NCBI GenBank assembly: GCA_976226885.1
Contig: OZ320314.1
Location: 58,962,001-59,026,000 of the forward strand
DNA length: 64,000 bases
Source of the DNA: Iphione sp. A-MEVVRFRX5
Lineage: Eukaryota
Direction: 5' to 3'
A model generated the notes under the pieces. The model did no database searches. It had not been told where the DNA came from and worked only from the letters and a program-made list of their open reading frames with translations. This document shows, in pieces, positions 9,326-34,524 of this stretch. A program made the translations under genes and the position numbers. The number at the start of each line of letters is the position of its first letter. Position 1 is the stretch's first letter.

Positions 9326-10006
9326 AGTACAGGGCAAACCGACAGGCTGCCCTACTGTGTTGCCCACTTTGATCGACTAAAATGGTGACAACACAACGCA
9401 CGCCAATCCGAAATCTTGACGACCCCAATAGTTCTAAATTTACCTCAAAATAACAGAGAACAAATGGCTTCTAGACTGCCACTGGTAGCATTCAACAACA
9501 ACAAATGTAACGATACAACGTACACCAGGTCGAATCAAACACTGTGATTGACTAAAATGCCAAAGACACAATGCACAAAGTCAAAACCACGACAACAATG
9601 AAAGTTCTCAAAAATGGCGACGACGCAACATACACCAGGTCAAACCAAATATCACTGCCTCTACGTGTCTACAGTGCTACTAGTAAATCCCCAGGGGAAA
9701 TACAATGCAAAAGACACATATACTAACCAAAACCAATCAATAAAATACCAAAAATCTATGAAAAATCGAAGACAACACTCCTCAGAATGACAAGCGTGTA
9801 GCCGGGTCAATGACTTTGAAATGACTGTCTATGCTTGTGTGTGAGATCACGTGATACTATCTCAGAGGGACACCTAGTGTGGAGCAATGGAACTAAAGTA
9901 GTTGTTGGAAGTAGAATAATGTCGCCAAAGAGTGCTCATTCAACATAAAAACAAGCTATAATTGTGCTCTGTGCAACAGTGTTGTTTTAGGTGTGTTTCT
10001 GATCAC

Positions 10007-10313
10007 GACCAGCCCAAACCCTAGGTAGCGTGGGGGTATTTCTTTTAAAAAATTGTTTCCTTCACTTTCTTTCTCTGGTATTCAATAATAATAAAGACAA
10101 TATGAAGAATTGTGACCAATTTGCATGGGTTTCACAGTTTTTTTCTGACTTTCCATGGATTTTGTTGTTTTTATACTGAATTTACCAAAACGTGCTGTGA
10201 AAACATGTATCTAAGGAAACTAAGCATTGGAAACTCTTTGGGGCCAAAAAAATTTCAGGTAGGGTGAGGTTTTACTAGGTAGGGGTGGGTGACCAGAAAC
10301 AAACCTATTTTTG
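10007..10313 (+). mobile_element. End-truncated copy of the MITE at 16814-17180
   Basis: Colinear similarity across ~300 bp (ctaggtag..gaatttaccaaaa..tatctaaggaaa..ggggccaaa..ttcaggtagggtgag..ttactaggtagggg..accagaaac). Confidence 0.8.
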
Positions 10314-11019
10314 TTTTGCAAATAAAATATATTGGAGCTAAATATTGACCAATTTATCAGTATTTACTCTTGAATACTAGAAAGATTTTAAGTAATCCCC
10401 CCAAAGGTCAATCAAACTGGTCATGACCCAATCCAAGTATACCAATAGCAAAGTCCACAATTGATTGATTTTAAAATGATCATAAAAATATGTATCTAAG
10501 GACACTTATAACCACAGACTGCTTGCAGGGGCCAACAAAAAAGTTACAACTTTTGTAACTAGATATATATGTACACATGTAACATAATTATTTTTTGCAT
10601 AAATTACTCTGTATCATGCTGTTATTGAGTGTCTTTTATGGTGTGTATGCAGATATATGACGATTTTTTATGTATCAAAAAAAAACCCTCAAGAGTGTGG
10701 ACCTGCAAGGTCTACTGTCCCCCACCTAAGTGGTCATTTCATGCTTGATTGTACTTCCCTTGGTCAGGTTGCTACAAGGTGGTGCTGGTAGGAGGGATGC
10801 ATTGGTGAGTGTGTGTTCATGTGTAGGACTGCATTGTTAGATTTAGAAATCACTAAACAAGGTACATATAATATTTGTTTGTGGTTGTGGTAGCAAAAAG
10901 AGTACATAATTTCACCTTTAGAATAATTGAATAACTACCAAAATTACCCAGTGTCATGGGCTCACATATATAAATACCATATATCAAAATCAGTTTATTG
11001 ACTGAAGAGTTTTAGAGTT

Positions 11020-23630: not shown

Positions 23631-26231
23631 TTAATCTCCTTCCCCTCTTTTGTCCCTCTTTACCCCCGCTGTTTTTGTCTGGATCCGTGTCTTGCATGAT
23701 GTGTATTACATGCCGCCTAATGTCTTTGCGGTTGTGTTTGACATGCATGAAGTCCATGGAACACCTCCATCTTTCTCTGTCAGACATGCCACTGACTTAG
23801 GCGATTGTAGGTCTATCTTGTTGTGTGCGGCAGGCCTCCAGTCTAAGATGGATATTGTTCTGTGTATGACTTACTCGCATCCTTAGCCAGTGCCTTCTTC
23901 TAGCTCGATGAACATACCCCTAGCGTATAAGATAAGGTTTCGGCTGCTGTCTGACACACTCCCTCTCAGCCATAACACAAACATACACACTCAGGACTCC
24001 AGGCAGCACCTCTTTCTCGCTCTGTGATACATTCCCACCACCGTACATACATGCACTACATGCCCAAGACAGCTCGGGACAGTATAGCTTTCCCACTGTT
24101 CTCTACGGCTCGTGCTTAATATGTTCTTCATCCTATATGCCGACGTCCTGACCCCAGACAAGGGGAGGTATTTTCACGGTGTTTGCCTCTGTCCAGGTGA
24201 AGCCAGCCAAGTGTGAAGGGTGACCGCGACTTCTAATAGAGACGCACTGTCTGTGTTTACAGGGGTGCGTGACCAGTGTATTTCGGGTATATAAGTGTAT
24301 GTGTGTAAGTGGATGCATATGTGTGTTACTGTTTATTAGTTTGAATGTGTGTCTGTAGTTGTGTTTGTGTTCGGTGTTGAGTGTGTGATGGTACGTTTAT
24401 ATGACTTTTCACATAATTAGTGGACTAAACATTAAGAATGCTAATAACATTAAGAATACTATTTAAAAATACTAATAATCCATGGATATATCAGAGTATC
24501 TCACTACCACCAGACTGGCTGATGCAAGTTCATGGTATTTCTGTCCGTGGATGACTGGCTGGTTGGGTAGGTCTCATATCCTATGAAACAAGGCTATGCT
24601 TCCACTCAGTGATACGACCGTGAATCAAGGGGAGATCTGAGGTACAAACCTTTCTTTTGACCCAGTGGTTGTATGGGAGAAATGTGAGTACAGTGCTTAT
24701 GACATCACATGTTTAATGTGGTGCCGAAACAGGATGTTGTATCTTCTATACTTCGCTAATATAAATTTGATCAGTCACTTCTGGTTGTCAAAAACACGGC
24801 TTCGAATTATACCTCTTCAGGCGTAATTGTTCTGCGTTTGTATGAAAACGACTTTGTCTTATCAGATTTTGAATCTTCAAAATTTAAGCAACTTATCGTG
24901 GTCATAAATGTGGCATCACCAGATGTGAGAGGGAAGGTAAACCCAGAGACACTGACAGGAGCATCGTTGATATCTAAATTCTAACATTCTTTATTGTACA
25001 AAGGTCTGTACAGAGATCCAGAACCTCTCATTTGGGAACATGTACTGTACATGTATATTTATACATGATGTCCGAACAACAAAGAGAACTTGCTGGTACA
25101 TGGAGATGACCTTTCAAAGGCCCTGAAGCTAAAATCGCTCGGTTTTATTTTAACCGCCTAACCATTAATGCTGTCCGAATATTAACTTTTTGCAGCCCTT
25201 GGACTGAATAATTCATGCCCGAACCAGTCTAAGATGTGGGCCAGAAACGCTTTTAAGCCTTTTCGTCATTCTTCAAGTGGGCATGACGTCACAGTAGCTG
25301 ATAAGCCTGGTAGTCTCAGTCATATATAGGTCAAATCCCTGGGGTGGAGGTGAATCGTAGTGGATTTCTCTCTTTGAGCTATTATAATGTTTAGGCATAT
25401 AATAACCATTTGGCATTGATTTCAATGCTAATTCTGACATTATGATTAAGACACATGTAGTACTACCTTAAGCTGAAGAGCAAATGTCAAAATTATAATT
25501 GGTTTGTTTTTACCAGGCTTTAGAGTTCATATTAGAATATGCAGAAACTCCCTGATTATCACCCACTTTTCACCTCTGTAGTGTTTTTCCTGAATTATGA
25601 CTTTTAACAAAGACTATAAATTTAGACACTAATCTGGTCATTTAGGTTAACCATAAACATATGTATATATCCCAAAGAATATACAAGACACTTTAGAAAT
25701 CTGTACCTAAAAGGGTTTGACAACATATTGTTTACATCTTACTGGCCACAAGTACCCGGATTCCCCACTCCAAGAATATACCAGTGCCCTAATGACCGCC
25801 ATCCCATCGTACTAATACATAAATAAATACAATTACATGGACTGATCATTCATAGGCGTGAGGATGACAGGGCCCACTTATCTGAGATTCTGAATATGCA
25901 TGTAAGTAGTCTATGCAATTTTCGTACCACTACGTTCTTGTTAATCAAAAGGGTTGTTTAAAGCAAGGTTTGTGTCTGTTTTTCTTTTTTTTGTGCTTGC
26001 CTCAGATCTTGGGATTCAAATTCAATTCAATTCAATTCAAAAACAATTTATTCTCCTTCTGTCGCCATAATAACGGCGGTGTTAACAGATAAGAGTTACT
26101 TACACTGCACATGCTGACAAATTATTGCAGGTGCAGGATGATTAATGAGATGGATACATGGTACAATAGAGATACATATATATAGAAGAGCATGTTATGT
26201 TATGGGATTTTAGTACAGTTGTTAAAGTGAC

Positions 26232-29111
26232 TTAATGTACAACAGTAATCTTGCATAGTGATATAAAGTCTTTTCTCTCTGGGATGTTTCTTAACAAGGC
26301 ATCAAGGTTGTTCCACATTCTAGGCCCAGTATATGCTATCGAGTGTAGAACCTTTTTGGATTTAGGTATTGGCAATTTGTAAGATAGACTATCGTTAAGT
26401 CTTGTCTCTATATTCTTCTCACTATTCCTGTTTACTATTGCTAGATTTGATGATCTGTACATCAGATCAAGTATAGATACTTTGTGTCTCTGATTAATCC
26501 CACTAATTTGATAATAGGAGTGTAATTCATCTGATGTTTTGTCACAAACCCTATGAAACTTCTTGTAAATTAAGTGTAATAAGCGATTCTGAATTCTTTG
26601 CAATCTGTTCATTAGCATCACAGAACTACAGCCAATGAAGGCGTTACAGTAATCTATAAGTGGTAACATAAAAGATTTGTATATTGTTAGGGCTGCTGCT
26701 TCTGTTATTGTATATAACACCTTGGATAACATATATGATTGACTTGTTAGTCTTTTGATTAGATGTAATACATGGGCCTTCATTGTTAATTCACAGTCAA
26801 TTATTAACCCTAGATATTTGTATTCATGAACAAAGTCAACATTTCTATGATTCAAGCTGAATAAATGTACATCTTTGCAATCAATATCATTAGTCCCTTT
26901 TATTGTCATAAGCTTAGTCTTGTCAACATTGATCATCAGTTGGTTCATTTTACACCAGGATTGTACTTGATTCATGATGATAACCATTTTGTCACATAGT
27001 TTTGCTGCACTTTTATCACTACAGTAGCATATAGTTTCATCAGCGAATAATATCGAAGACCCTGAAACTGATGCAGGAAGATCATTTATGTACATTGAAA
27101 ACAATAGTGGCCCTAGTGTGGAGCCCTGTGGAACACCAAATTGTATCGTAAGATCAGTTGATTTTGTACAGTTTACGTTGCAGCATTGGGTTCTGTTGCT
27201 TAAATACGAAGTAAACCAGTCTGTGCTATTCTGAGAGAAGTTGAAGTAGTATTTTAGTTTATGGACTAGTAATTTGTGATTTATCGTGTCGAAAGCCTTA
27301 CAGAAATCAATAAAAAGCAATAGACTATTATTTTTGTTTTAGTACTCTAGGTAGAGGTCGTTAAGTAATTTATGTATAGCATTTTGAGTATTTCTCATTT
27401 TCCTAAATCCATATTGCTCTACACATAATAGACTATTTCTCTCCAGGTGATCATAAAGTTGATTGTATACAATCCGTTCAAGAATTTTTGACATTAAAGG
27501 TAGGAGAGAAATAGGTCTGTAGTTATTCAACTGGGTAGCTGATCCACCCTTGTGCAATGGCTTGATAGTTGCGTCTTTCCATTTTCTGGGCACATGACAT
27601 TCCTCAATAGATTTGTTTATTAGATAATGAAGCTGATTGACAGATAGTCTTAGTAAACATTTTAATACTTTAGTTTCTAAACCATTTATGTTAGATGATT
27701 TGCTTACATTAATGCTTTTGATGATGGGAACAAGGTCAGAAATCATGCAAGGGGCTAGTTCAAAGCTGGGGACATCCTTGCCTTGATTAGTGGGTAGTTC
27801 ATTCACATCCGTATCTATTTTGGCATCCTTCAGTTTTGATTCAGCAATTTCAACAAAGTATTTGTTGAAGACATCAGCAACTTGATCATCACAAAGTGAA
27901 GAGCCATTGTGAGTTATGGTAATAGGGTTATTTACAGTACCATCTCTACCCATAAGAGTGTTCATTACCGACCAGAATTGTTTCGGATTGGATTTGCTAG
28001 TACGTAACTTTTGCCTATAGTAGAATGATTTGGCTCTTGCTATAGTATAGTTTACACTGTTTCTTAAATAACGGTAGATATTGGCAGTGTTCTCATCATT
28101 TTTTCTATTCCGGTACTTTGACATGTAGTAGTTCTTTAATCTTATCAACCGTAATAGTGATTTACTCATCCATGGGGGGCTCTTGTTGGTTATAGTTACT
28201 TCCATCATAGGAAAGTGTTTATCTGCAATTTGGATGAGGTTATTGTAGTATATATCCCAGCAGTTATCTACATTTCCTTCATGATAAAATTGGTACCAGT
28301 TGAGAGATTTTAAATCATCCTTTACTTTTACTTCGTCCACATCCATCATTGACCGGACTTGTATAACTCTAGGCTTAACAGTGTCTTTCTTTTTCAGTAT
28401 TTTCTTTATTATAAAGGTTGTTTCATGGTCCGATATATTCCAGCCTACTGTTCCACTTTTAAAGATATGCTTGCTGTTAGAAGATATCGTGTCTATTAGA
28501 CTGGACGATTTCTTATCTACTCTTGTAGGAGTAGTTATATGATTAATGATGCCATAATTTTTAGTCAAATTTATGAATTTCATACATATTTGATCTTTCT
28601 TGGCCAGATTGATATTTATGTCACCAAGTAGGAAGATATCTCTTTTTTGGTTTACTTTTGATAGAGCCTCTTCTAAGTGATGTAGGAAATTTGTAATTGA
28701 ACCACTTGGAGGCCTGTATATGTTAAAGATCAGCATCATTTTCCAGTTGTTTGCTTTCACTTCCAATACTTGTAATTCAATGTCACTTGATGAGATGTTT
28801 AGATTTGAATACACATTCATGTCCACTAAGAAGTGATCTGTCAGATATGTTATTAAGCCACCTCCACTTTTGGTGGTGTTATTATTGGTAAGATGCTGTC
28901 TGTCATGCCGTATATGTTGATAACCATTAATTTTTAGCAAATTGTTAGGGTAGTTGCTGCTTAGCCATGACTCTTGTAGACCTAGGATATGGCATCCATG
29001 CATATTTAAGTAGTACTGAATAGAGGCTACTTTATTAATAATACTTCTGACATTGAGCTGCATTATTACAAGTCCGTTCTTGTGATTTGTAATTTTATTG
29101 CAGTTAGTCAT
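26232..29111 (-). pseudogene. LINE ORF2: AP endonuclease + reverse transcriptase, one in-frame stop
   Basis: APE motifs: QLNVRSI, LQESWL, YRPP, LGDININ, IDTI, SDH. RT motifs: NYRPISLL, QYGFR, IDFCKAFDT, GVPQGSTLGPLLF, FADE, YKYLG. ORFs 27339-29168 and 26232-27320 share a frame and are split by TAA at 27339-27341. The expected catalytic DD reads DE (27036-27041). Confidence 0.95.
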
Positions 29112-29157
29112 TAATTGATACAAAAGAGATAATGGTAGTGCTACTCTCCGCAAGGTA

Positions 29158-29875
29158 TGGTTTAACAATAAACCAATACAACTTGTCGAAGATAAATAGA
29201 CAAAGGCTTGTAGTGTGTTTGGTATTTATGAAGATGTACAGACATGAATATACATTTCCGTGAGTAAGACATGGAGCTACTGATGAGCATGGTTTATCCA
29301 TAAACCAATGCCCATATAGTGTAGCACCAACATTACTAGCGCTTATACAAATTGTTACATTTTCGTTATTATGTTTTTGATACGGTTTGACCACAAACCA
29401 GTATTTCCCACTTAGAGACAATAAATACAGTAAAATGAGTATCCAATGAACGTGCTCTACTGATACATTTTTATACAATACAAATGCGATCATAATGTTA
29501 GTGCGAATGGATAAGGCACACTTTGGATCAGCGAAGTAAGATATTGAATCCATATAGTTTCGAGATAGAGACTTTACAATACTAGACAACGAAGTGCTTA
29601 TGGCCTTTGATAAGGTGATTTAGAATGGCACGGTATACCTATATACCCTTGCCACTGTCAGATACGCTAAATTGACATGACATACTCCTCGCAATCACAT
29701 ATATTTATATGGACTGATGTAATGAGACGGATCATCTTGTGAGAACTGGTGTATCCATACACCAAGTAGTCAACAAGAGACCCAGCTACGTTCGATGTAA
29801 CCATACATCCCAACGAGCAAATTTAATGATAGATATATTTGCTATTAAATGTGAGCATGGTTTATCCATAAACCA
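29158..29875 (-). repeat. Array of 5-6 tetraloop hairpins in the LINE inter-ORF spacer
   Basis: 18-nt hairpins at 29158, 29290, 29383, 29747 and 29858, plus a variant at 29632. An identical 37-nt direct repeat occurs at 29284 and 29852. Confidence 0.8.
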
Positions 29876-29912
29876 ATGCCCATATAGTTTGTCAACTAGA
29901 TCGATAATATGG

Positions 29913-30599
29913 CTAGTGATTGCGAGTGCATGCCAGTGCTATTTGTTTGGCCCAAAACTGTCTCGTGTCCACAGTAGGATGTATGCCATCACTCAATTTA
30001 TTGAAGAAAGCTCTGTATCTCTTTCCTTGGTGTATATGTACCGGTCTTTCGGTCCAAGGTGTTCTAAGGTTCTGTAAGTCATTAGTTTTGATAATCAGCT
30101 TGTTTATCCTAGCTATTGCCTTAATAAAGTTTATTTGCACATCAGGTTCACATTTTGCGACTACACCCTTGTTGATTAGATGTTCATTAGTTTTGTCAAA
30201 GTCTACAGCTGTAATGGGCGCCCAGATGATTTTTGGGCAGTCTACTAGTTCAAATAATCTCTGTTTGTGCATCAATAGAAGTGAAGCGAACCTGAGATAC
30301 AGAGCATTCTCGTCATTATCCACTGGTATTGTTGCTTGGATAGGTGATGGTGTTCTCTTGATTAGATCACAGATGCCACCAAATATTACTATTTGCTCAT
30401 ACAAATACAGGTTTTCTGAGAGATAGATTGTTTTCATCAGTCTATTAAGGTCGCCGCCCGGAAAACATTCAACTTGATAGTTCGTGTTGTCAGTTTTAAA
30501 TCTCTCAAGGTCTTCAAGTAGGTGTCTCCCTCTCGAGTCAGAAACAATCAGTACGTTAGGTGGCGGCAGATGTATATCATCTCTCAGCGGGGCATCATT
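29913..30599 (-). CDS. SGNH/GDSL-type esterase frame of the LINE (open from 30599; first ATG only at 30437)
   Basis: Block I VLIVSDSRGRHL, block II FPGG, block III IVIFGGICDL, block V DGIHP. The frame is open for ~54 codons upstream of the annotated ATG. Confidence 0.8.
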   Translation of the reverse strand, partial: NDAPLRDDIHLPPPNVLIVSDSRGRHLLEDLERFKTDNTNYQVECFPGGDLNRLMKTIYLSENLYLYEQIVIFGGICDLIKRTPSPIQATIPVDNDENALYLRFASLLLMHKQRLFELVDCPKIIWAPITAVDFDKTNEHLINKGVVAKCEPDVQINFIKAIARINKLIIKTNDLQNLRTPWTERPVHIHQGKRYRAFFNKLSDGIHPTVDTRQFWAKQIALACTRNH

Positions 30600-30683
30600 C
30601 TAAAGAGAAGTTAGTATCATATAGTTTTGGGGGATAGATCAGTGCGATTAATTCTGAATTATTAGAATTTGCATCAAATCAGA

Positions 30684-31780
30684 TCAAGTTTTGTTTAGTT
30701 TTTCTCTGATTTCTACTAGCGATTTCCCAAGCATATTGTTACCTGGGTAGTCATTTTGCTGACCGATCGTTTCGTGCAGTTCCTTCCCCGTTCCAAGCTT
30801 TGTGTCCCTGCTACAGTATACGATCTCCCTGAGTCCAGTTCCTATTAACGTCTTATTTAGTTCCGAGCTTTGAGAGAATTTGGCTGCTAGCAATTGTTTG
30901 AGCGATTGTTCGAGTTCACGACCCCAGTCTTTGTTGTCGCCTAGTGAGTTGTTGATTTCGTTTATTCGGTCTTCCGAATGATTACGTAATATTACCTCGA
31001 ATAGATCAGGTCGGTTCAGTACTTTAGCTTTACTGTATAGTAGTCCTTGTGAGACTGATGTGAACACAGTACCTTTGAAGGAAAAATTACACAAGGCAGC
31101 GTTGGATAATGATGTATGCTCCTTGGAGAAGAAAAGGTGGGTTTTAGTTTGATAGTTGCATGCATTAGTCAGGTTTATTCCTTTAGGTAGTTTGTACAAT
31201 TGATTGAAGGGGATTTTGTTGCTATCGACTATGATATATAGTCCATACACAGTAGCCTTGTGCTTCTTCGCTCTGGCTAGTTCTGCGATTAGTTTTAGTT
31301 CTCTTTGAACGTTCTGGGCTTCAGATGGTAAATCTTCGTTAACCCATACATGTTTGTACTGTTTTATCACATTATGCCTGTTCTTGTAAATTTTGTCTCG
31401 TACAGAGATTGACTCAAATTCAACAACTACTACAGTTTTTTTACCTGTTTCCCTTATCTCAGTTATATCATCTTCAGTGATACCGGGGGTAATAGATTTT
31501 AGGATCTGCAGAGTTTCCTCAAGTAATTTTTCCTGTGTAAATTTATAGCCTGATATAACAAGGTTGCATCTTCTTGCCTGGACCTCATCTATCAGACGTT
31601 TGTCAGACAAAGACTGTATTTCGGACTTCAATTTACTCACTTCACTGGTTAGTTGTGCCTTCTCCTTTCTCAGATTGACAATATCTTTTTTTACCTGGTC
31701 AATGTTAGTTTTGTTAGTGTTAATACTAGATGTAAGAGAGTCATTTGTTTTACTGATCAGCGCTTTTAGTACATCACAAG
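30684..31780 (-). CDS. LINE ORF1, 3' part: coiled coil + RRM-like/CTD core + NADAR (YbiA-like) domain
   Basis: Heptad region followed by RRCNLVISG..VVVEF..RDKIY..VWVNEDLP (L1-ORF1/Tnp22-like). NADAR ~30690-31140: LSN, YSKA, W, AKFSQ, LIGTG, SRD..GTG, GNNMLGKSL..R. Confidence 0.8.
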
Positions 31781-32341
31781 CGCCTTCGGCACTTTCACTG
31801 GTTGCTTGGAGGATAGCCCTGTCCCTACAATGTAACCAATGCATGTGTGCTGTGATGTCTGCTGATTACTTAAAGTAATTTCATGCAAAATCAACTGTCT
31901 CAGTGATGTCCCTACACATCTAGATGATCCTCTGCCACCCATCCTACACTTCTTGGAAGACTTCGCAGCTTCCCTGGGTTATTCCCACACTAATTTTCAC
32001 TGCCTTCACCCCCCCCCCCTCCTCTTTTCCCACCCCCATAGCTGTGGCCGCAATACAGCCACATTATGTAACTCCAGAACATCATGAATCTGGGTCAGCA
32101 CCTGGCATCCCCTTTGTATTCATACTCTGGACCTCAAAATGTAGGGCCCAACATCATATGGTTTTGATAAACAGCCTTTACCAAACATAAAATATACATA
32201 AATTACACTTTGTTTCTGTACTGTTCCCTTATAAATGAATGTATACAAAAACTATAGTACTTTTTAAGACCACATCATCATGAGATGAGACTTCACTGGG
32301 GACGGACTACTTTCGGGAGACGTTTTTAATAGGTAGTGTAA

Positions 32342-32613
32342 AAATGTTTTGTTTGCTCTTCAACTAGTTTGTCAATCTTTTGCTCTAGCGAGGAACCTGA
32401 GCTGTTGTTACCAGGTTTGGGCGAGGTCGGTTCAGCACTTGTATCACTCTTCATCCCAGTCTCTCCATTGATGGAGTTATCCCCAACTTTATCAGGTGTA
32501 ACAGGTACATCATCGGTCTTTTCAGGATCAGCCTTTGAATGAGAATCAGATTGAGGACTGTTAGCAGTATCATTGGTTTTTAATTTTGTCTTTGTCTTCT
32601 TGGGCTTCACCAT
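32342..32613 (-). CDS. LINE ORF1, 5' part (MVKPKKTKTK...LEQKIDKLVEEQTK), separated by a ~560-bp interruption
   Basis: ATG at 32613. The basic/disordered N-terminus ends in the start of a coiled coil that continues naturally into VLKALISKTNDSL at ~31775. Confidence 0.65.
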
Positions 32614-34524
32614 GTCTAGATTCAAATGTTCAACGCTAACCGTTAGTGATTGGACTAAGCAGTAGCAGTAGCGATTATGGAGAGTAGAATTATACAAGGT
32701 ATATGTGTCAGGCAAATTATTACATACAACTGCTTGTGGCTGGCACGTAATAATAGTATGTTAGATGTTGGGAGTACTTAACTCAAGAACCACTTGTAGC
32801 TCGTACGGTCCTACGGCTTAACGCTCAGGCTGCACACACTCAACGGTCAACGGTCAACGGTCAGCTGCTAGACTATTGACTCGCACGATCTGTCGTTGTT
32901 GTTGTTCAGCATATCCTACGCTTACTGATTGAATTCCCATGGCATTTTGTAGTTCTATGCAATCACTGTAGTATTGCTCAACATTTTACAGGTCCATGGT
33001 ATGTATTTCAGTAAGTGCGCCTTTTCTTTGTGAACAATTATCTCAGAGCGGCTCTCGCACACGTCAATCTCGGTCCGCCATCTTCTTTTCCTTTGAAGGT
33101 CACTCGCAAATGGAATGGCAATGCACTGGCCCAAGCCTGTCCTCGAGTGAGGTGCAGTCATTCATTTGCTAGTTGATATTAGCAAACCCTATCTCATTCC
33201 TCCACTTGAGAAGTTTTGTTTATGTACAGTCGTCTCAATAAATGAATGGATCTATTACATTGATTTTCCATGGGAAATCGAGGGAATTGAAGTAATGAGT
33301 TGTTTTTCCATACTAAGAAGCCGGTGAGTTCCCGGGAGATATATTTGGGGATGGGATGCTCTTGGGTACGCAGTGTACAGAAATCCTCGCATTAATTGAA
33401 CAAAATTGGACACTCTGCACAACAGTTTCTTTTGCTTTTGTAGTCGTTGTTGTTTTTGTTTTAGTTGTTGTTGAGTGTGGAGTGACTGCCTTCGTCACTC
33501 TATGCTGTACCTCGAATCAAGCTCTTGAACAGTGTTTGATGCTCCATTAGTATGACCTCGTCCTCCTCCTGCCCCCCACCTTCCGTCACCCCCGCCTGGA
33601 CACGCACTAGTGACGTCGTGCGTGAAAGACCTGTCCCATGTATTGATTCCCTAGACAATGCGCCACGGGTCGGAATGATGCCTTAAGTAGCTGGTTGTGG
33701 AGAACCCTGGACAGTGCACTTGTTTGACAGAAGGCTTGGACTACATTTTACATGTACCTGAAACAATATACATGTACTGCCATGAATGTTTGTGTATCAG
33801 TGCTGTCCATTTTCAAATTCAAACCGAATTCATCTGAAAACTGCTATCAGTTGAACAAAATTTGGTGAAACCCAGTGTTGCATTATAAATCTGAGCTCTC
33901 ATTTTCCAGACCTGAACTGTTGCATCATGGTGTTTGGTTTGCAGCCTCTCGCACTTCTGTCCCTTTATTTCCCTGCCCCGTCTCCCTTCTTCACTCTTTA
34001 CATAATGCGTTGAAAGTGTTCTTTTAATAAGTTTTATTGACCGTGGCCTCCAGGTCCTAGTCTATCCAGTAATTGCTTGGGATCAAACGACAGGCACATC
34101 TTATGTCTTCATAATTGCTGCTAGCAGTGCTTTCACAATTCAGATTACATGTATCGTAATAGTCAGTAAATGAAAGCGGTCGAGGGAAAAGACCAGCTGA
34201 CTGCCAGAAAGGGGCAGGCAAAACCACTTACTGTCACGAGCACATGCGTGTACATATACATGTATGTCATGGGGCTCTATGTTTTTTTTTTACTTCATGT
34301 AAATTGTAATCACATATTCGTCATGCCTAATGTAACGATCTGTTTAAGTAAGCTGGAGAACATTGTTTACCATAGTAAGTTTTTCTGGCACTGCACATCC
34401 GTAAATGCTTTAGATTTCGTCAGTGTACGATGGCAGCATCACAAAAATTGGAGTGGGATCGGCCTATAGGGAGAGAGGAGAGGCAGAGAAATGCATGAAA
34501 GAGGGAGATGGTGGAAAGAATGAT

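Follow-up and report, generated by a model that had tools for sequence, protein, structure and literature searches.

The locus

The stretch of DNA analysed here, referred to as the window, is 64,000 nucleotides of contig OZ320314.1 from Iphione sp. A-MEVVRFRX5 (GenBank assembly GCA_976226885.1, forward-strand positions 58,962,001 to 59,026,000). It contains a long interspersed nuclear element (LINE) that spans ~26014-32870 on the minus strand. By three-frame translation of 25900-33300, all coding pieces of the element are co-oriented on that strand and lie in one shared reading frame. They specify, from 5' to 3', a first open reading frame (ORF1) with a coiled coil, an RNA recognition motif (RRM) and a C-terminal NADAR domain; a separate frame for an SGNH-type esterase; and, behind a long non-coding spacer, ORF2 with an APE endonuclease and a reverse transcriptase (RT). 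The element region is free of N, and no second copy lies within the 64-kb window. The initial annotation, made from the letters and their translations, had described one co-oriented LINE with a LINE tail at ~26015-32870 and the same modules: an ORF1 with coiled coil, RRM-like core and C-terminal NADAR domain, a separate SGNH esterase frame, and APE-RT. The profile and structure searches described below bore out this architecture, as did the minus-strand orientation, the single frame and the (TTGAA)n tail.

ORF1: an L1-type protein with a NADAR domain

ORF1 (31844..30687) encodes 386 aa counted from the first ATG. Pfam recognizes the NADAR family PF08719 in residues 241-383 with an E-value of 4.2e-19 and a score of 69.8 bits, against a gathering score of 35.1, over positions 8-162 of the 163 in the profile. 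Residues 11-99 match coiled-coil Pfam families weakly (DivIC, E 7.5e-6; CENP-F_leu_zip; others). The window ORF1 alone falls below the threshold for Pfam Transposase_22, a family matched directly by three of 41 ORF1 family members. A profile built from these 41 sequences, with window residues ~80-240 included, matches structures of human and mouse L1 ORF1p, namely 2YKP (E 7e-11), 2YKO, 2LDY and 2W7A (E 9e-8), the last of which contains the RRM alone. Because the family profile finds the L1 structures and three members match Transposase_22, the ORF1 protein (ORF1p) is assigned by profile similarity to the L1-type (type II), consisting of coiled coil and RRM, with a NADAR domain at its C-terminus.

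Relatives of ORF1 are numerous. An exhaustive HMMER search against 1.84 billion protein representatives returned 1985 proteins with E<=1e-3, of which 560 also pass E<=1e-10. The best matches are only 25-29% identical, with alignments that begin in the coiled coil and run through the whole NADAR domain; RRM and NADAR are both spanned by 140 of the best 150. One of the matching public proteins (P0005, 1075 aa) has five NADAR domains in tandem, which Pfam matches as five stretches at E 1e-133.

The esterase frame

The esterase frame (30599..29916) is 228 aa long and separate from ORF1. Its sequence is silent in Pfam, with no match even at E 10, and phmmer against the PDB returned noise only. The AlphaFold2 model from the single sequence had a pLDDT of 36. 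Relatives were gathered from contigs that encode NADAR-ORF1 homologues and by a profile search, and the model from the resulting 21-sequence alignment reached a pLDDT of 91.7 and a pTM of 0.88. Of the 50 PDB structures that Foldseek ranks best against this model, all but a few designed scaffolds are SGNH/GDSL-type hydrolases (E down to 4.9e-8, probability 1.00). VIA-align gave Z-scores up to 17.5, with brain platelet-activating factor acetylhydrolase (PAF-AH) at Z 14.9. As modelled, the esterase frame has the flavodoxin-like SGNH fold.

The family shows the motifs ADSRGR (block I), PG (block II), GGICDIT (block III) and LxDGCH (block V). Asp21, Gly48, Cys77, Asp204, Gly205 and His207 are invariant among the 21 esterases and Ser22 is conserved in at least 90%; all of these residues are present in the window. 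The position of the block III Asn, which contributes to the oxyanion hole in SGNH hydrolases, is an invariant Cys in all 21 esterases (Cys77 in the window, 30369-30371). A weak sequence alignment, in agreement with the fold match, places GICD of the esterase on GIND of the GDSL lipase 3P94.

The window frame has no in-frame ATG where the relatives start. It begins directly after a pyrimidine-rich, splice-acceptor-like stretch (...cttctctttag, 30600-30612), where the relatives have an ordinary ATG.

Recurrence of the three-gene order

The initial annotation had proposed a search for the ORF1-NADAR, SGNH and APE-RT order in other DNA, and that order was found. DNA was fetched around nine NADAR-ORF1 proteins or around esterase homologues. 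Seven of the eight public contigs that have such an ORF1 together with downstream sequence (L001, L002, L003, L004, L006, L009 and L011) show NADAR-ORF1, esterase ORF and APE-RT in this order, with the proviso that the L002 contig stops after the esterase. Three of the loci (L001, L003, L004) are different families in one assembly, and the seven come from at least three samples. L006, the same element as L007 and L008 from three runs, was reached from the esterase side, and its upstream frame matches NADAR at E 6e-26. At the syntenic loci the hidden Markov model of the esterase scores E 1e-27 to 1e-83; the esterases of L001, L009 and L011, which lie outside its training alignment, score E 5e-28, 6e-29 and 6e-41, respectively. 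At a further locus, L005, the esterase and ORF2 are present and the upstream sequence is too short to judge ORF1.

Since the same order recurs in seven contigs at a protein identity of only 25-32%, the three-gene layout is, on this sequence comparison, a property of the family and not a one-off capture. The layout is also old, because the ORF2 proteins of the loci and the window are only 29-43% identical to each other. In the Atlas, the clusters closest to ORF1 and to the esterase come from eukaryotes, annelids and molluscs being the commonest recorded phyla; the lineage is probably old, diverse and mostly lophotrochozoan.

In the relatives the esterase ATG lies 1, 8, 11 or 106 nt after the ORF1 stop. 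This spacing bears on whether ORF1 and the esterase might be joined into one protein by splicing or readthrough, for example as a coiled coil plus esterase of the kind seen in ZfL2-1 ORF1p. The window copy taken by itself would fit such a joining, as its esterase frame has no ATG, lies in the frame of ORF1 and follows the splice-acceptor-like ...ctctttag. The relatives speak against it: in L001, L002 and L006 the esterase has its own ATG 1-11 nt past the ORF1 stop, and ~20 public clusters list it as a protein of its own with 215-250 aa. Long NADAR-ORF1 proteins (570-780 aa) were searched for an esterase in their C-terminal tails and none was found; these tails are of low complexity. A joined protein is thus improbable.

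Loss of functional residues from the NADAR domain

The NADAR domains were compared in an alignment of 141 rows from the RRM to the end of NADAR, made of 140 of the best 150 ORF1 matches and the window sequence. Four columns stand out among the 140 relatives, with Glu in 94%, Lys in 83%, Glu in 94% and Trp in 91%. The window has Ser265, Asn295, Tyr343 and Leu350 at these places. The EKEW signature occurs in 106 of the 141 sequences, and SNYL in the window alone.

Three of the four SNYL positions fall on documented functional residues, namely E43, K75 and the last-strand Glu. Ser265 corresponds to E43 of the P. nicotianae NADAR (8BAU), which is E88 of E. coli C7 (pairwise alignment and published numbering); the substitution E88Q inactivates the C7 NADAR (PMC11543638, PMC11125620). 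Asn295 and Asn299 correspond in the pairwise alignment to K75 and R79, which hold the pyrophosphate in the P. nicotianae protein. Tyr343 takes the place of the last-strand catalytic Glu that defines the YbiA family, according to alignment with 8BAU and E. coli YbiA. K272, the equivalent of K50 of the P. nicotianae NADAR, is the only ligand residue retained. The rest of the domain is well kept, with 15 of the 18 columns conserved at >=90% unchanged in the window. Among columns conserved at >=70%, the functional positions deviate in 4 of 4 cases vs 5 of 30 for the others (Fisher P 0.003, indicative only as the positions were chosen after seeing the data). The window NADAR domain thus appears to keep the fold without the known ADP-ribose-binding and catalytic residues, and would amount to no more than a structural module or pseudo-enzyme.

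The codons at the four positions (TCA, AAC, TAC and CTT) are at least 8 nucleotide changes away from Glu, Lys, Glu and Trp codons, whereas the whole copy has one stop in ~1570 codons. Because so many changes at four codons stand against a single stop, the residue losses almost certainly predate the copy and would already have been present in the active element that produced it.

NADAR enzymes are known to strip ADP-ribose from guanine and, in a 2026 report, from cytosine, in DNA and RNA, and act as antitoxins and in phage counter-defence (PMC11543638, PMC11125620, PMC12945103, PMC11825919). In keeping with this, the initial annotation had suggested an anti-ADP-ribosylation or nucleotide-binding role. 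Such a role could be pictured for the window NADAR itself as an active counter-defence enzyme that erases host ADP-ribosylation of LINE nucleic acids: the NADAR fold is there (Pfam E 4e-19), known NADARs reverse guanine and cytosine ADP-ribosylation, CARP-1-type guanine ADP-ribosyltransferases (ARTs) occur mainly in bivalves and some other invertebrates (PMC12945103), and most relatives keep the catalytic signature. Against this, Ser, Asn, Asn and Tyr stand in for E43, K75, R79 and the last-strand Glu, Leu replaces the conserved Trp, and a change at the first of these positions is enough to kill the activity of the C7 enzyme. An active window NADAR is hardly to be expected. With SNYL in place of EKEW, the suggested role had to be given up for the window element, for which it is not plausible because four conserved ADP-ribose-binding or catalytic residues are lost. 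As judged from the conserved residues, the wider LINE family probably encodes an active YbiA-type NADAR, and an anti-ADP-ribosylation role is plausible for the lineage.

ORF2, the long spacer and the state of the copy

ORF2 (29111..26235) matches the Pfam families PF14529 for APE (E 6e-9) and PF00078 for RT (E 3.9e-22). It aligns over its full length to ORF2 of five relatives at 29-32% identity with no frameshift. The succession of APE and RT in one ORF identifies the element, at the level of domain content, as an APE-type non-long terminal repeat (LTR) retrotransposon, i.e. a LINE. The catalytic box of the RT reads FADE (27047-27036), whereas all five aligned relatives have ADD.

The ~800 nt between the esterase frame and ORF2 (29112-29912) are best read from comparison as the long spacer that is usual in this lineage rather than as an insertion, because every relative has a long non-coding spacer at the same place (452-1845 nt). 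No ORF and no DNA similarity common to the spacers of the relatives was found. The window spacer contains a 50-nt direct repeat (29284-29333 and 29852-29901, 568 nt apart), of which 37 nt are perfect (29284-29320 and 29852-29888).

The copy looks full-length and is predicted to be inactive: a TAA interrupts ORF2, the RT box is FADE, and the esterase frame has no start codon. The initial annotation had listed few lesions, and of these the TAA and the DD to DE change stand. The 'one insertion' that it counted with them is the spacer just described, and the missing esterase start codon and the degenerate NADAR site were absent from its list.

Ends and coordinates of the element

The features of the element are collected in Table 1. 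Upstream of ORF1 lies a Lys-rich, low-complexity ORF (32326-32613) of 96 aa from its ATG with a heptad-like stretch at its end, separated from the ORF1 ATG by ~480 nt without an ORF. It could be an upstream ORF in its own right, or a piece of the ORF1 N-terminus that an indel or insertion has severed.

Table 1. Features of the LINE in window coordinates, listed from the 3' end of the element to its 5' end
Feature	Position	Strand	Evidence
3' tail, (TTGAA)n on the element strand, equal to (ATTCA)5.2 on the + strand	26014..26040	-	Tandem Repeats Finder: period 5, 5.2 copies, 95% matches
3' untranslated region, without ORF, between the ORF2 stop (26234-26232) and the tail	26041..26231	-	ORF list and sequence reading
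ORF2, second part: RT palm/thumb and C-terminal domain ending in the ...YTGPRMWNNL... motif	26232..27338	-	Pfam RVT_1, E 3.9e-22
In-frame TAA stop breaking ORF2	27339..27341	-	Translation and alignment with relatives
ORF2, first part: APE endonuclease, linker and N-terminal RT; ATG at 29111-29109	27342..29111	-	Pfam Exo_endo_phos_2, E 6e-9; RVT_1, E 1.4e-7
Non-coding spacer of ~800 nt, esterase frame to ORF2	29112..29912	-	Spacers of 452-1845 nt in relatives at this position
Stand-alone SGNH-type esterase frame, 228 aa and stop	29913..30599	-	21-sequence alignment, AlphaFold2 model, Foldseek, VIA-align
Short spacer between ORF1 and esterase frame	30600..30683	-	Relatives have 1-106 nt from ORF1 stop to esterase ATG
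NADAR domain, ORF1 residues 241-386 and stop	30684..31124	-	Pfam PF08719, E 4.2e-19
L1-type RRM and following linker or stretch like the C-terminal domain (CTD) of ORF1p	31125..31607	-	41-sequence family profile against L1 ORF1p structures
ORF1 N-terminus, heptad-rich coiled-coil-like stretch; ATG at 31844	31608..31844	-	Weak coiled-coil Pfam matches; aligns in full-length relatives
Presumed 5' region, boundary putative; Lys-rich upstream ORF 32613-32326 and (CCGTTGA)3 repeat 32840-32863	31845..32870	-	

Origin of the copy and proposed function of the lineage

Taken as a whole, the element is read as an inactive copy of an APE-type LINE from a three-cistron lineage, belonging to a sub-lineage whose NADAR had already been stripped before the insertion; we put the probability of this reading at about 0.8. 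That the NADAR, the esterase or both are one-off host captures or nested insertions of unrelated elements, foreign to the LINE family, is very improbable, since the absence of another retrieved copy of the exact family, the yield of word-based protein searches (no match for ORF1, one weak partial match for the esterase) and the lack of a bounding target-site duplication are set against a set of three modules whose order and orientation are repeated across seven independent public contigs at 25-32% protein identity, and against window pieces that are co-oriented and even in the same frame.

Several observations weigh against parts of the preferred reading, that of a three-cistron lineage with an early loss of the NADAR site. 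The Cys at the oxyanion-hole Asn position makes the activity of the esterase uncertain. One locus, L010, has a NADAR-ORF1 and an intact APE-RT, and the 1 kb that separates the two (9968-11008) holds no detectable esterase; judging from this sequence, the esterase cistron can be lost. A target-site duplication around the element was looked for and not found, and the 5' boundary at 32870 is unconfirmed. The lineage-level loss of the NADAR site is argued from codons and not from a comparison of copies. Finally, it is from the short distance between the ORF1 stop and the esterase ATG in the relatives that the esterase is taken to be probably translated by termination-reinitiation.

In the three-cistron lineage, one RNA would encode ORF1p, a free-standing SGNH-fold esterase of ~220 aa and, after the long non-coding spacer, the APE-RT ORF2p. 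By analogy with L1 ORF1p, the ORF1p would trimerise and coat the LINE RNA. In most family members the EKEW-type NADAR is probably a glycohydrolase that would remove ADP-ribose from bases of the element RNA, the cDNA or the target DNA. The esterase may engage lipids or membranes, or remove acyl groups, as the ZfL2-1 esterase does; the latter shows weak SGNH hydrolase activity and binding to acidic phospholipids (PMC3905857). In the sub-lineage of the window, the NADAR would have lost its binding and catalytic residues before insertion and kept those that define the fold.

The role of animal NADARs has been stated to be an open question (PMC11125620). CARP-1-type guanine ARTs, one possible source of the modification, are found mainly in bivalves and in some other invertebrates (PMC12945103). 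A wider proposal, put forward tentatively and with the odds against it, is that many 'animal NADAR proteins' are the ORF1 of three-cistron LINEs, that their NADAR erases base ADP-ribosylation written by the host (by CARP-1/pierisin-type ARTs or PARPs) on LINE RNA or cDNA, and that sub-lineages of the window type have made it non-catalytic. If this is true, the LINE NADAR eraser would be for eukaryotes what phage NADAR and viral macrodomains are in counter-defence. A good many animal NADAR proteins may be encoded by transposons.

LINE ORF1 proteins are usually regarded as RNA chaperones, and the CR1/L2 esterase was, to our knowledge, thought to be the sole enzyme among them. The lineage described here adds a second enzyme fold, NADAR, on an L1-type ORF1p, with the esterase as a third cistron. 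The window copy would mean that an active LINE lineage kept propagating with a NADAR stripped of catalytic and ligand-binding residues. The lineage offers a natural system for the role of accessory enzymes in retrotransposition, for the expression of three ORFs from one LINE RNA, and for ADP-ribosylation as a restriction of retroelements in animals.

Comparison with known systems

Three traits look CR1/L2-like: the tail is a short repeat, ORF2 does not end in a Cys-rich region, and ORF2 of the window and of the relatives have in common a C-terminal G(P)xxWNxLP...F(K) motif. This clade assignment is presumptive, and the oyster NADAR-ORF1 LINEs carry a Tx1 label (PMC12477816). Searches of the APE domains against the PDB gave no informative match, and the Atlas search with ORF2 gave no clade-informative names. 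The likeness to human and mouse L1 ORF1p (type II: coiled coil, RRM, CTD) lies in the coiled coil followed by an L1-type RRM. The window lineage differs in having NADAR after the RRM and linker, in an ORF2 without a Cys-rich C-terminus, and in the absence of a poly(A) tail. L1 is not a close relative, because a five-relative ORF2 profile scores 106 bits against human L1 ORF2p (APE and RT) and 93 bits against R2 (RT alone).

Precedents for an esterase in a LINE ORF1 come from CR1, L2, RTEX and Penelope elements (PMC3905857, PMC4120745, PMC5408684). Metcalfe & Casane restrict esterase ORF1s to vertebrate CR1/L2 groups (PMC4120745); Schneider et al. also list cnidarian and sponge elements as carriers (PMC3905857). 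The closest parallel is the 'type IV' ORF1p esterase of ZfL2-1 and other CR1/L2 elements (Kapitonov & Jurka 2003; Schneider et al. 2013, PMC3905857). Both systems have a LINE-encoded SGNH-fold esterase upstream of APE-RT, with a conserved Ser and Asp-x-x-His catalytic triad and block II Gly, and a 3' tail of short repeats; LINE esterases have PAF-AH as their classical structural neighbour (PMC3905857), and the window esterase model matches it too. Fusion of the esterase behind a coiled coil, the feature of the ZfL2-1-type ORF1p, was found neither in the window nor in its relatives. Here the esterase is free-standing, without a coiled coil, behind a complete L1-type ORF1, and the oxyanion-hole Asn (N195 in ZfL2-1) is replaced by the invariant Cys.

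NADAR domains have been noted in retrotransposons before. A passing remark of 2025 notes that Tx1 families listed in Repbase for the Pacific oyster (Crassostrea gigas) have NADAR-like ORF1s, and the same paper reports a Gypsy lineage with NADAR in Pol in Ectocarpus (PMC12477816). The oyster Tx1 elements share with the window lineage a YbiA-family NADAR in a LINE ORF1, and the Ectocarpus Gypsy Pol shares a NADAR in a retrotransposon protein. The comparison is by description, and that account makes no mention of an esterase ORF, of the extent of the family or of the status of the catalytic residues. A literature search, with Repbase and Dfam outside its scope, found no paper that joins NADAR, esterase and LINE. 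NADAR in a LINE ORF1 is thus not wholly unreported, PMC12477816 being the only mention found, and the three-gene layout was found nowhere in print. The initial annotation, which knew of no described LINE with both modules as separate frames, is borne out for the pair within the literature searched, while NADAR alone already had its precedent in the oyster.

The NADAR/YbiA hydrolases (DarT1-NADAR antitoxins, phage gp30.3, P. nicotianae 8BAU and E. coli YbiA 2B3W) belong to the same Pfam family as the LINE NADAR, and the consensus of the LINE family retains the YbiA-type last-strand Glu and the equivalents of E43 and K75. The LINE system differs from them in that the element encodes no partner ADP-ribosyltransferase, in that the functional residues of the window copy are replaced, and in that its NADAR is fused to the RNA-packaging protein of a eukaryotic retrotransposon.

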